Source: Tubulanus polymorphus
Taxonomy: Eukaryota > Animalia > Nemertea
Direction of reading: 5' to 3'
Length of the DNA stretch: 64,000 nucleotides
Assembly (NCBI RefSeq): GCF_964204645.1
Contig: NC_134036.1
Location: 9,341,859-9,405,858, forward strand
Positions 30,575 through 55,133 of the stretch are shown one piece after another. Within the stretch, counting starts at the first letter, position 1, and each line of letters begins with the position of its first letter. Position numbers and translations under genes: made by a program. The notes beneath the pieces were generated by a model. The model did not search any database. It was given only the letters and a program-made list of their open reading frames with translations, and was not told the DNA's origin.

Positions 30575-32324
30575 CTGAAAACATACTATTAACGGGGTTT
30601 GTGGGCTCAAACCCAATTGTGTGGTGCTATTTTAATACCCGTTTCTGGGGCATATATGTATAATTATATGCTAATGATATGCAAACCTCACAATTTATAT
30701 AGGCCTATATGCCCCATGAATTATATACGTTTCTGGGGCATATATGTATAATTATATGCTAATGATATGCAAACCTCACAATTTATATAGGCCTATATGC
30801 CCCATGAATTAAATACATGCACCTATACATGTAACATAACTGAAACTATGCCCTTCGTGTGGAATACCTGAGGCCAAACGCTTAGACATTACTAAACAGC
30901 GAATTATCTCACTGCCTATTCTATTGTAAGCGACCGGGCAACAGTCGGTTCTAACAGGTCTGGGTCGATTCATAACAATTGCGATAGGCTTTCCTACAGA
31001 GCTTCGTCCAAGTAAGATATACAACTTCCATATTTCTCCTTGCTTTGTCGGAATATTCTCTACTCTTCACTTCTATTCACATTTTTGAAATATGGCTCTA
31101 ATTGAGGGAATGAAAGTCCTTTCAAAGCTTTCAATATCCAGATACATCTGACAACAGAAACAAAACAAAATTTTCAATGAAAATTGGAAATCTCTTTATT
31201 AGGAAAAAAGCATTAGCAAATTTACAAACTCTACAAGATAATTCTGATATATTTATCAACCCTAGAATTGTAAACCACGAGGAAGTTGGATATTCTGCCA
31301 ATGGAATATTTTAATATTATTCATGTCATACATTCAAAATACAGTCGATACCTTCTGACTCAAATCATTTAGGACCAGTGATTTTCGTTATTTCAGTTAG
31401 GCGATAATTCAAGTTCCAATATGGAAATTCATGCTATGTTTCATAAGAATTGTGTAAAGATTAGCTGACCTGGAACTCGATGCGTTTACTATCCCAAATC
31501 AAATATGTTATACCGGTAGTCATTGGATTGTATGATATTTTGTCAACTGCAGATAAAACAGAAACTAATCACATTTTTTAATCATTATGTTCTCAACCTG
31601 AAATCAATGGCCTACAACAAATATACCTGATAGGAATGAGATTAGTCTACAAAAATACACCATTTACTTATGTTCACATCATTAAAAAAAAAACCTTCTC
31701 CACATTTTCTCCTGTAATCTAGTTCATTACATTTCTATAACAGGTGTAAGACTGGCATGAGGGAAATTCTAACATTTATTCAGATCGGTCATTTTTCATT
31801 TACTGCTTTAACAATTTATATACCGGTAATATATTTGATTTTGTTTAAACATTTTCTTCTAAACAGTAATCATTGCGCTTTAATAAAAGGAGAAATCGAT
31901 CAGAACAAAAACAAGCAATCATTGAAAGAAAACTCCACATACGGAATATCAATATATAGATATTATTTACATTGGGCACAGTGCTTAGTGGCAAAAACAA
32001 AGTTTCACATATCTTTAATTAGGACCATGGGTCCAGTACGACCAAATGAGTAAATTTTAGTTTTGAGCGAAAAAATGTATTTTTCTCGGATTTACGATCG
32101 CTATCTTGGTGCATTATATATGCATGTCCAACTTTCTCCAAAACTCACTCGCATGGCAAAACAATCAATACTATGTTCTATATGTACGTTCTTGCTACAG
32201 CTAAACAATAACGTAATTATTACAAAACATAAATAAAGTGAATTTGACGCATCGATTGACGCGTCAAAAATGCTATTTTAATTTTGACAGTATATTTACG
32301 CCATACATTTAGAGGTTCCCTATA

Positions 32325-35300
32325 TTATTTCGTTTTCTGCTTCTTCGAGATAATATTATGTAGCCTCGTTCGAACCTGAGGCAAAGTTCGGCTACCACCA
32401 AGTTCTTCAACTACTTTTCTCAAGTCTACTGCTGGTGCCATTCGCTTATTATTCAAATAGTTATGCAATATCTTACAAAAAATATCTGTTTCTCCCTTTG
32501 TCCAGGGTGCCCTCTTAATACGTGACTTCTCATCTGAAACAAAATCATATAAAAATGCTACACAAACCATTGCATCAAGACTACTGATAGGTTCTCACAA
32601 TAGGCCCCATTTCCCCTAGGATTGTTATACCGTCCATAAGGTGGTTTAATCACTATGGACCCTATCCATGAACTTACTTTGCGCTTCAGATTGGTTAGTT
32701 TCCATCTTTGGCGGAACTTCTGCATCGACCATGTCATTGTCATCACTGTCATCACTGTTTTCACTGTCTTCACACTCAGTCCACTTATCGGCATAATCCA
32801 AGGATAATGGGAGTGCTAAAACGTTATCAATGAATAAATGCACATGTACACATACACACACACGGGTGACTGCTGTCATAGCAGAGAATACTAAAATATT
32901 TAATCTATCAGTAAAGTCAGACTTACCATCGGGATCAATATCCTCCAATGACTTTCCTTTGAATCTTGCCATAATGCCATTTTCGGCAGCCAATAGCGCC
33001 TTCGCTACCTTCGCTTTTTCAACGAGTGAAGATTGGAGGCAATATACATCTGCGTGAATTTTCACATCGTGCCCCATATGATCAGCCACCATCTTCAACT
33101 CGTTGGGCTTCATAGACAAAATCTGAAGTTATAAACCCAAATACTGGCTTTAGGGCTTTCATCAATTTCAAATCACTTCACAATATAATTTCCATTCACA
33201 AGTATCATTATAGCCGATCATTGATTTATTATAATCATTGCTTGTTATGTCTTTCGAAGACCAGAGCTTTACCTTCTTTATAGATATTCTTGATGAATGA
33301 AGGTTCTATTTTATATTCTTAAAAATTTCATTCACTAATACATACAGGGCTGGAAATTAGGCTTGTATGATAGTACATGTAAAAGCACTTCATGATAAGG
33401 TATGTCCTGATACGGATGTTTTAGGCCTATACAGGATCCGATATCAGCACTTGTCTATTATCACTTGTCATCCTTTTATGATAGGTTTTATATACTGGTT
33501 AACTGAATGTAGAATTGTGGGACATACATAAATAGGAAAAATCACTTCATGGTCAGGTAGTGTCTTGATATGATGGGTTTTATATGTCACTTAACTGGAT
33601 GTAGAATTGTGGGACATACATAAATAGACACTTCATAAATAGGTAGTGTTCTGATATGATGGGTTTAATATGCTATTTTACTGCATGTAGAATTGTAGGA
33701 TATATATATAATGGGAAAATCCTTTCATGATCAAGTACTGTCTAGATGATTACATGACCTTAACGGTCACATGCCCTCTAAATTTCAGTAAGTAATTAAC
33801 CTAATGATTCTTTTGAATATAGATAACACCTGATATCAGGAAGACAGAAAAAAATCCCCCATATACATGTAGTCTTAAATTGTCAGGTTATTAATCAGGT
33901 AATATAAATATACAACATTTATAATTGTAATACTGTGGTTTGTATTTTAAAGAGGTTTGTAATGCTTGCAATAAGACTAATCCTAGTTCATTGGTAAATG
34001 ATAAACCTACTTGTAGTGTAGTTGCAAAGAAAGATCGGAGCTTCGTCGATCTAATTCGTTCAGGTGCATTCAGTCCGGGACACAATTTTGTCATTTCACG
34101 CATTGCAGTACAACCGTCAAGTGGTGTGTCAGCACGTTTCCTAAAATGAATGATGGATTTGCAATGCTTGCACAAAACCTGTCACGATATGAACTAAAAA
34201 AGGTTCAGATTGTATTGCTTTGTAAAGTATATACTGTATACAAAGACATTTTTCTAAAAAATGGCTGCATGGCCTGGTAAGCACTAACTTATTTGATTAT
34301 TCAGCATGTAGATGCCCACGAACAAAACTATATCAGTTGTGATGAGAGATTAAGATTTTTATCAGGACTATTAATCAATTGACATTCAAAAAGGGAATGA
34401 TTGTACCTTAATAATAATAAAATAAACCTTGCATTAATCGAATCCATTCAAGAAACATTCAAAATCCGTATTGCAATTGTTAATGGGTTAATGTTATTTG
34501 AATAGGAAAGTGCAAACACTGTATAAATCAGAAAATAGCATTCTTCCTAGAAAGACCCACATAGCTTTATCTGTGAAACTTTACACTGACATTTCAGATA
34601 GACTTCTATCCATCTTCAGAGTTATATAAAAACTCTTCTAAATCGCTGAAGATGGATAGAAGTAAAATCTATCCAAATTGTCAATGTCAACAGATATACG
34701 TTGTTGAATGTTCTTATTATACACGCTATATACACGTCTTTTATACACGTCTTTTATACATGCTAAATAGAATGCCACAAGTCTAATTGATTTCAGAATT
34801 GATGTTACCTAGCAAAAATGAAGTCACTTGTACTTTGTCTGGTATCGAGGATATGTTCGATAGCTTTAACCATCTTCTCAGTAAGCAGAATGTATACACC
34901 TCGAATACTGCGAGTGCTCTTCCCTCGGATTTCTATTACACGCATTCTACAAAAAACTCTCCAAAATCAACCCAACATATCTTGTAAATTAGATAAGAGC
35001 ATATGACTAAGACAATTTTAAAACAACAATTACCGTTTGACCAAAAGCTGCTCAGCTAGAGACAGTGATTGCAGGATCTCTTGATTCTGATCGGCATCCG
35101 GCACAATATTTTCGAAATCGCTCATGATCATTTCTTCCACTTCTGATATCCGCCTTCGGTTGAAAAGGACTATACGGACAAGAACAGCATAAGCAAGATG
35201 TTTCCACTGTTTTGAAGTAGGCTCATGTATCATCAACGCTTTATCAATTTCAGAGTCGAGCCAATCTTTAAAGACTACTAAGTCATCTGCCACTGGATGT

Positions 35301-53470: not shown

Positions 53471-55133
53471 GTCAATCTTGGTGTTTGCCTATCACTCAGG
53501 ACTCGGCTTTTTAGTATAGATTAGGTGATGTACGGATACAAGATAACCCATAGTTCTACTAATGAATTATCAACCATATAAACTGATTTAAGTGCATAAC
53601 CAGTACAATAGCCGGTTTACAGATGTTTAGATTGTCTACGTAAACTCTTGAACTTAAACTACTATCACACTTGAAAGCAATACGAAATACCAGCCATCAT
53701 TAAATGGAGAAGCTTTAGACTTAGACATTGAGCGATTACTTCTAAGTTACTCATATTTCCCACTGACCTCAATTACTAAATTAGTTGTTAATATTCTTTT
53801 CACTACAGATGTAGGTCTACGTTCCCGACAACTGATACGGGTTACATACATAGTCTAACATAGAAATGGAGAATGGGTCTACGAATTATTGAGTACAAAT
53901 TAGACACACAGGGAATGGAAGCAATATATTGTAAGAACAAGCACTTATAATGATAAAGCGGGGATGGCATAGCCGAGGTTGACTGTATTCTATTTGTTCC
54001 CTGGTACTAACTACAGATAAGGAAAAAACCTTCCTATCTGAATACTGCCTGATAACAAAATGATTTTCATGATTATGCAATATGGCCTACAATTCTATTA
54101 AGCATATCAAGCGTATTTGTTTGTATCATTAAATATCCCATAAATGGTTTCTGACAATGACAACTACTTTTGAGTTTATCAAGTCGGCAAACCATGGTTT
54201 TGATGATTTCAAAATATCAATGCAATACATACTTCGGACAATAAACAGTAATGATACACTTGTATTGATCTAATCAAAGAATGAAGTCCATCTCTATTCG
54301 ATTTACATAAAAAAGAATTCCTTCAATGCAGTGTATGTAAAACGAATAAAGAATCGACGGTTAAGTTCAAAGCACGTGCTGGTCGTTTTAAGGCATGTAC
54401 CTCTAAAGCAGAGTACATAATGGTACCCTTCGTCCATTTAAAAAAGTTGAAATATACTGCATTTGGCCTATGGATAAATGTCTCCAATGATGTTACATGT
54501 AAAAAGGACATGCAAGATCGGCAAACTAATAAAGAAAGCTTACCTTTTTCCTTTTTGGCTAGGCTTAGACTCAATGTTCTCGCATCACCGCGAATAGTAA
54601 CTGGACATGCGCATTGACCTATCGGTCGAGTTCATTGTTTGCTGTAGGAGATGAACCCTACCGAACCTCGAAGCAAAGGATTATTTTAATTGCCCAATGA
54701 ATTTCATATGAACAATGTGTTGAGAACACGCGTTTTTGGAAAAAAATATATCTTAATGTTCTTGAAGATTCTTGCAGTTTGTAAGTGTAAATCATATACA
54801 CACTACACAGCCGTACACCCTGCTCTGCTCTGTATGGGCTCTCCCGAACTTCCGGAGTTCTGCCAGGTGATGGTTTCTCCTAACTTCTGACGTAGAAAAA
54901 GGGGCGGAGCTTATCTGTTCTAACCGTCAGATGGGGCTGCTGTATTGCTTTATATATAAATATCTTTGTCAGACCCGATTACGCCTACGACTGCAAGTGG
55001 GTGATTGAACAATTTTCTGAGCGTTTGCAAGGTGTAACAATTACGGGACACTTTGTATGCCCCGTAATTTTTCACCACCCCGCAACAAGGAAATTAAAAA
55101 GACAAACGCCCCGTTAATCGTACATTATCTTAG

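Follow-up and report, generated by a model that had tools for sequence, protein, structure and literature searches.

Between two TA microsatellites in the genome of the nemertean Tubulanus polymorphus lies a 24.6-kb segment that carries a tyrosine-recombinase gene, and the locus raises the question of whether this segment is a transposon moved by that recombinase, a passenger of some other machinery, or a group of host genes. The segment occupies positions 30575-55133 of the DNA analysed here, a stretch of 64,000 nucleotides from contig NC_134036.1 (RefSeq assembly GCF_964204645.1, positions 9,341,859 to 9,405,858 of the forward strand; hereafter the window, to whose numbering coordinates refer unless another sequence is named). 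All of its recognised genes are on the - strand, with a KMT5A/SET8-like SET gene upstream of the recombinase gene. The findings make it highly probable that 30575-55133 is a full copy of an autonomous DNA transposon, moved by its own tyrosine recombinase and integrating specifically into (TA)n microsatellites.

The segment is delimited on the left by an exact (TA)50 tract (30475-30574) and on the right by an exact (TA)41 tract (55134-55215), which continues imperfectly to 55223; the two tracts are read as the halves of the target microsatellite. A 10-nt motif, ATTAACGGGG (the G-box), occurs on the + strand at 30588-30597 and on the - strand at 55109-55118, hence inverted and 13-15 nt inward of either end, and these are its sole exact matches in the window. 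By our own estimate, the chance of an inverted 10-mer common to the first 40 nt of both ends is ~1e-3. Tract lengths and motif positions had been claimed in a preliminary description of the locus, and each proved base-exact on checking. From the first 30 nt inside each TA tract, an imperfect inverted repeat can be aligned (CT--GAAAACATACTATTAACGGG--GTTTGT versus CTAAGATAATGTACGATTAACGGGGCGTTTGT), the inverted likeness of the ends reaching only ~25-30 bp with its exact core of 10 bp. The recombinase-proximal terminus (CTGAAAACATACTATTAACGGGGTTTGT..., 30575-30634, + strand) includes the left G-box, is the same in all five genomic copies described below, and is followed by a subterminal direct repeat (two units of 88 bp, 30640-30816, + strand). 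The SET-proximal terminus (...CCCCGTTAATCGTACATTATCTTAG, 55040-55133, - strand) includes the right G-box, a second box, CACCACCCCGCAA, at 55074-55086 (- strand), and a hairpin formed by ATTACGGG and CCCGTAAT at 55040-55068.

Left-end (826 bp) and right-end (834 bp) sequences served as queries against the whole T. polymorphus genome (268 Mb in 77 pieces). Both queries led to the same five places on five chromosomes, with the ends 23.5-24.6 kb apart: the window copy on C12 (24.6 kb), C7:12043969-12067887, C6:16682537-16705988, C2:9579957-9603659 and, in reversed orientation, C1:18271675-18295482. Retrieved with 2 kb of flank each, all five begin with CTGAAAACATACTATTAACGGGG and end with CCCCGTTAATCGTACATTATCTTAG, are bordered by TA repeats of differing length, and are set in DNA that is unrelated between loci. 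Their whole-length identity is 99.82-99.92%, and their differences in length consist of the unit numbers of a 162-bp and a 91-bp satellite together with a few small indels. The proposal of a complete element with ends at 30575 and 55133 thus holds in every copy, both boundaries being exact and both ends being linked to the recombinase gene at constant spacing; the locus is multi-copy and non-syntenic, not the single-copy, syntenic locus of a domesticated gene.

Illumina reads from another individual covered the element at ~33x against ~7x expected for a single-copy sequence, corresponding to ~4-5 copies per genome. Alleles private to the window copy were absent from that individual (32998G in 0 of 36 reads, 33164A in 0 of 17) and new variants were present, so the copy set differs between individuals, a result that fits ongoing or very recent activity, though it is not proof of it. 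Some of the variant reads probably stem from a fragment at C10:6603399-6604638, a diverged or truncated relative that is 92-94% identical to element positions 30956-31400. Separately, ~60 bp inside the element (32232-32293) showed a contig depth ~10x that of its surroundings, with many reads running off both sides, and looks like a fragment of a high-copy repeat.

The main coding exons of the recombinase gene (32328-37265, - strand throughout) specify a protein composed of an OTU domain, zinc fingers, a tyrosine recombinase and a Myb-like tail. Its large exon (34808-37244) contains the OTU cysteine (36999-37016), zinc fingers (36168-36227 and 35909-35971), the Arg I motif RRISEV (35138-35164) and the Lys motif GK (34910-34930); the xxR box (KLR, 34026-34049) is in the exon at 33975-34151, and the last exons (32328-33143, with introns inside) bear the GH...Y motif (33039-33080) and the Myb-like tail (32328-32513). 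Three short upstream exons (39303-39380, 38939-39001 and 38404-38493) come from the NCBI gene model. In four of the five copies, an open frame of 744 aa runs through the OTU cysteine protease (Pfam E = 3e-6), an acidic linker, the zinc fingers and the N-terminal half of the recombinase. In the window copy, one extra A in an A11 run (A12 at 36096-36107) splits this frame into 393 and 363 aa, a private frameshift that may be real slippage or a homopolymer or assembly error; reads from the other individual gave lengths of 10, 11 and 12 for this run. The NCBI model derived from the C6 copy (P0001, 1179 aa, 'uncharacterized protein LOC141907100') contains the Pfam domains OTU and Phage_integrase and maps to window positions 37244-34808, 34151-33975 and 33143-32328 and to the small exons within 39380-38404, plus exons from the 162-bp satellite. 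Phage_integrase scores 29-33 bits with a cut-off of 27.1, and the C-terminus is weakly Myb-like (E = 0.01, under the Pfam cut-off).

An alignment of 20 family members revealed an invariant or nearly invariant Cys-x2-Cys...His-x3-Cys finger, together with equally conserved Arg871 (LFNRRRxGE), Lys919 (RGK), Arg991 (S-T-x-L-R-K), and His1017 and Tyr1026 (LGHDxxVHxxFY). The AlphaFold model built from this alignment has a mean pLDDT (predicted local distance difference test) of 78.6, and its top 45 fold matches in the PDB are all tyrosine recombinases, with XerH best and XerD, Cre, Tn1549 Int and lambda Int also included; when searched by sequence, the recombinase core matched no solved structure. 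Relatives of the OTU region are fused to MULE or hAT transposase domains or to a PHD finger, and the fusions to MULE and hAT domains agree with reports of OTU domains in Ginger1 and Helitron proteins. The expectation that gene pipelines would annotate these genes as SET or vertnin was not borne out: NCBI names every model 'uncharacterized protein', the name vertnin does not occur among the OTU-region relatives, and a literature search linking vertnin with Crypton found nothing.

The genome of T. polymorphus holds at least 12 further, diverged recombinase loci (26-48% identity), at four of which a SET paralog is found on the same strand as the recombinase paralog, 6-24 kb upstream of it. One such relative of 41.6 kb, also bounded by TA tracts, is ordered as (TA)n, a terminus CTGAAAAC...TTTACGGGG, the recombinase gene, the SET gene, the other terminus and (TA)n, with a terminus reading CTGAAAACTATGCTTTTACGGGG; it is like the studied element in architecture and orientation, but is almost twice as long, has a recombinase only 48% identical and yielded no OTU domain. 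A second family, here called B, is present in the left flank, with recombinase exons at 20101-25486 (+ strand, 43-61% identical) and an element end at 30474. Its terminus, ...ATCACCCCATAAACATACTCT, adjoins (TA)n in three of three genomic copies, the other two being at C12:10934458 and C12:10234704. Because this terminus abuts the (TA)50 at 30474, the studied element sits in a TA tract flanking another element and shares that tract with it. Ordinary host sequence had been claimed for the right side, beyond 55215, and the DNA past 55224 is indeed unique apart from one 400-bp interspersed repeat. The left side is not plain host DNA, since a different element of this superfamily ends there. Elements of this superfamily seem to accumulate side by side, each insertion perhaps preserving TA tracts as new targets. 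Recombinase paralogs were also observed within 3-7 kb of the C2 copy (C2:9603660-9623659, with OTU and SET) and of the C1 copy (C1:18302586-18303533). The 400-bp repeat of the right flank (55464-55865) has at least 40 scored genomic copies (640 candidates) at ~88% identity, and is probably a short interspersed nuclear element or a miniature inverted-repeat transposable element.

Beyond this species, a word-based search with the single recombinase protein sequence returned 3 matches and a profile search 27, while the set recovered by an exhaustive profile-free search was far larger: 4232 representative clusters, 565 of them at E <= 1e-30, most aligning over the full 500 residues. Named members, all 'uncharacterized', come from the nemertean Lineus, the bivalves Tegillarca, Mya, Saccostrea, Ruditapes and Argopecten, the gastropods Lottia and Littorina, a crinoid, a hemichordate, and teleosts including Danio. 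Lineus longissimus has two copies, 99.6% identical, with an intronless zinc finger - recombinase - Myb gene and the end ...CCCCATAAATTGGTACTAGTAAG|(TA)n; within the 22.6 kb examined at these loci, neither SET nor OTU was present and the recombinase was the sole gene found. Mollusc, hemichordate and crinoid members likewise yielded neither SET nor OTU, so the pair is not a constant feature of the family. A (TA)34 tract followed by GATCGAAATTACCCGGTTTACGGGG stands upstream of the recombinase gene in the bivalve Tegillarca, and no TA tract occurred within 10 kb of the Lottia locus. The gene model at the Tegillarca granosa locus (CM056597.1:5002386-5073051) spans 50 kb, and the (TA)34 and G-box precede the recombinase exons by 35 kb; should all of this be a single element, its length would exceed 60 kb.

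Alignment of seven termini from five families, three species and two phyla revealed a common TT(T/A)A(C/T)GGGG, starting 14-22 nt from the TA boundary, and several of these termini have a second box, AGACCTT...TG(C/T)GGGGTG, ~30 nt further in. All 12 termini examined in the five families adjoin (TA)n. The boxes diverge along with the recombinase yet keep their position, each diverged family having its own recombinase and its own version of the box.

The SET gene (45306-48173, - strand) has exons at 48173-48071 (ATG at 48173), 45888-45747 and 45558-45366 with good splice signals, and its last exon either stops at a donor, CAG|GTAAAT, after 45366 or reads through to a stop codon at 45306-45308. 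A consensus donor (AAT|GTAAGT in one, CAG|GTAAGA in the other) stands in the matching position in the SET paralogs of two further loci, with unconserved residues beyond it; conservation of the donor but not of what lies past it suggests, from sequence comparison, that SET may be spliced onward to downstream exons. Searched exon by exon, the SET domain is matched at a Pfam E of 3.6e-8, and its closest solved relatives are KMT5A structures (PDB 5teg, E = 1e-6). ELRYDY is present; the cofactor motif RLINHS is changed to RLINDG in the element and one paralog, with NH kept in two other paralogs. The SET intron (45889-48070) contains nested interspersed repeats, pieces of which are 72-92% identical to several other recombinase elements and to 21-28 kb of the window. 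The possibility of conserved element DNA outside the coding exons was rejected, as the likeness to related elements comes from these nested repeats.

Much of the remaining content is made up of a 91-bp satellite, in two orientations, and of nested interspersed repeats. A 162-bp satellite of 16.7 units (40261-42956, - strand), whose unit number varies among the five copies, has units in which a 66-nt symmetric exon, encoding DNVLTSKCSSDDSKQVSEFTCS and spliced by the acceptor ...ttctAG and the donor G|GTAAGT, is joined to a 96-nt intron, and several of its units are included in NCBI gene models. Arrays of a 91-bp satellite at 50922-51701 and 52159-53386 vary in unit number between element copies; a block at 39716-40104 is inverted relative to them, and a further one (33477-33747) is inside an intron of the recombinase gene. 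In a Pfam scan of 24 open frames and an inspection of all frames of at least 55 aa in 37266-55133, only OTU, SET and integrase domains were detected, twenty further open frames having no Pfam domain. The frames of the element yielded neither a DDE transposase nor a reverse transcriptase, and no gene for a capsid, a polymerase or packaging; tRNA and Rfam scans of it gave no match.

A mechanism can be proposed by analogy with the model for Cryptons (PMC3212892), with live observations of them (PMC9977147) and with recombinases acting on circular intermediates. The element would leave as a circle, or be copied into one, in which its ends meet across a short TA stretch as CCCCGTTAAT-N15-(TA)k-N13-ATTAACGGGG, the predicted junction being ...ATTATCTTAG-(TA)k-CTGAAAACATAC.... 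Once joined, the ends would make up two inverted recombinase sites around a TA crossover region, comparable to lox or att sites; through strand exchange, the recombinase would then recombine this core with a chromosomal (TA)n, leaving TA repeats on both sides. A crossover within TA would agree with the TA repeats at both ends of the element. The G-boxes would probably be read by the Myb-like and zinc-finger parts of the protein, and the OTU would be an accessory domain of the kind also found fused to other transposases. The SET protein may alter the chromatin of the element or of its surroundings, and the SET gene may be the 5' part of the recombinase transcription unit. A bolder extension is offered only tentatively and is itself rather doubtful: that SET, the 22-residue repeat exons, OTU, zinc fingers, recombinase and Myb-like tail belong to one transcription unit, and that these cross-phylum animal integrases would use a portable attachment site (inverted G-boxes with a TA core) to deliver cargoes above 20 kb to TA microsatellites and at the same time write or read a histone mark at the target, forming a natural, sequence-specific, large-cargo integration system of animals undescribed in the literature.

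Several points weigh against an autonomous, recombinase-driven element. The preliminary description had seen a near-intact gene with all catalytic residues; the window copy does have a single defect (one A) and retains the R, K, R, H and Y residues, but the family as a whole has Thr in place of the HxxR histidine (S-T-x-L-R). The SET domain may be inactive, because the NH of its cofactor motif is ND. Inverted G-box ends, imperfect over ~25 bp with a 10-bp core, contrast with Cryptons, which are said to lack terminal inverted repeats. Neither a circle junction nor an empty site nor a new insertion has been directly observed, the reads having been aligned to the element interior only, and no RNA evidence for the element was found, a probable transcriptome run having given zero cover, which does not prove silence. 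Nor are five copies explained by a simple cut-and-paste recombinase cycle alone. Finally, Ginger2-type DDE transposases have also been reported to put large elements into (AT)n microsatellites (PMC10871703).

This last point leads to the rival that survives best, a transposon with terminal inverted repeats that is mobilised in trans by a TA-targeting DDE transposase, either Ginger2/TDD-like or Tc1/mariner-like, with the recombinase as cargo or in another role. It would be in keeping with short imperfect inverted repeats beside TA and with the OTU domains carried by Ginger1 transposases. However, no open frame of at least 55 aa in the element contains a DDE domain, and the inverted likeness of ~25 bp compares poorly with the 50-180 bp of Ginger2 repeats; the Ginger2/TDD combination of such repeats with a 4-bp target duplication was not found, a duplication being unreadable within a TA repeat. 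Transposition in trans is further opposed by the pairing of each diverged family's own recombinase with its own box, which extends to the compact Lineus copies, and we regard this explanation as unlikely.

The long TA repeats on both flanks, recombination-prone as they are, could also have taken up circles by host homologous or microhomology recombination, without catalysis by a site-specific recombinase, and catalysed strand exchange is nowhere directly evidenced. Against this stand element boundaries that are base-identical in all five copies and boxes whose distance from the TA boundary is fixed in both phyla; both features are argued to imply a protein that measures from the boxes, which makes host recombination quite unlikely. 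Very unlikely is an endogenous virus-like or episomal element that uses the recombinase for integration only, as do telomere- or ribosomal DNA-integrating nimaviruses: its size (24 kb) and the combination of a zinc finger with a recombinase having a SAM-like N-domain do recall the architecture described for nimaviral recombinases, but capsid, polymerase and packaging genes are missing from its frames and about half of its length consists of satellites, introns and nested repeats. Segmental duplication of a cluster of host genes, or domestication of the recombinase, has only the annotation of the copies as ordinary 'uncharacterized' genes in its favour and can be regarded as refuted, since near-identical copies (0.1-0.2% divergence) occur on five chromosomes with exactly the same two boundaries and unrelated flanks.

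The reading of an autonomous tyrosine-recombinase transposon invites comparison with known systems. The element had been labelled a Crypton, a name that holds if taken broadly for DNA transposons that have a tyrosine recombinase and no reverse transcriptase. It is not a CryptonA: the CryptonA signature DUF3504 (PF12012) was found in none of 20 family members at E <= 0.01, nor in P0001 at E <= 0.1. Its short inverted ends also differ from the published description, in which Cryptons are a few kb long with no terminal inverted repeats and 4-6 bp terminal direct repeats (PMC3212892). Crypton insertion occurs by recombination of a short terminal donor sequence with a matching target, as seen live in Chlamydomonas for CryptonF-1_cRei (PMC9977147). 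Shared with Cryptons are a tyrosine recombinase as sole transposition enzyme, the lack of long terminal repeats, intron-bearing genes, ends that match the target (here TA) and an accessory cysteine protease (C48/Ulp1 in CryptonF-2_PS, OTU in the element), whereas the length of 24.6 kb, the microsatellite target, the SET gene and the amplified exon-intron satellite set it apart.

CryptonV, as cited from Repbase Reports 2012 in the consulted portion of PMC8869645, inserts in microsatellites and has cnidarian hosts. By that description it is, like the element, a microsatellite-specific tyrosine-recombinase transposon, and since CryptonV is on record in Repbase, the principle of microsatellite targeting is not new. 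In contrast to the cnidarian hosts cited there, the element is hosted by nemerteans, with relatives in molluscs, echinoderms, hemichordates and fishes; a cnidarian Myb-domain cluster among the nearest protein-atlas neighbours of the recombinase provides a lead only. Cre/loxP, XerH/difH and the Tn1549 integrase, which acts through a circular intermediate, are the best fold matches, and the joined element ends would similarly give inverted sites round a core. Unlike Cre/loxP-type systems, however, the element's recombinase has no detectable sequence similarity to any solved structure, its boxes are 13-15 nt from the presumed crossover rather than beside it, and its core is a repeat of variable length. 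Starship/Enterprise elements of fungi, for which a circular intermediate is reported in the portion consulted of a preprint (bioRxiv 10.64898/2026.09.21.753150), resemble it as large tyrosine-recombinase elements with genes beyond the recombinase. The element differs in its animal host, in the absence of their Captain domain, DUF3435 (PF11917; none of 20 family members), and in extra content limited to one SET gene and repeats, with no large cargo; the language-model resemblance between the recombinase and a Starship Captain is weak (0.89).

Animal Cryptons are mostly known as old or domesticated sequences, and, to our knowledge, exact ends together with signs of recent mobility are on record for very few eukaryotic tyrosine-recombinase DNA transposons. 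None of the papers searched described this size, the OTU fusion, the recurrent SET gene beside a recombinase, the exon-intron satellite or the cross-phylum terminal architecture. For annotation, the five copies and their relatives are now filed as ordinary 'uncharacterized' host genes. Because there are five near-identical copies with base-exact termini, an abundant (TA)n target and a terminal motif common to nemerteans and bivalves, the recombination sites and the enzyme are directly testable, and an enzyme able to insert 24-40 kb at a defined repeat of animal chromatin would be of practical interest for gene delivery. Several diverged families have a KMT5A-like SET gene linked to the recombinase, a recurrence which suggests that the life cycle of these elements includes chromatin modification.

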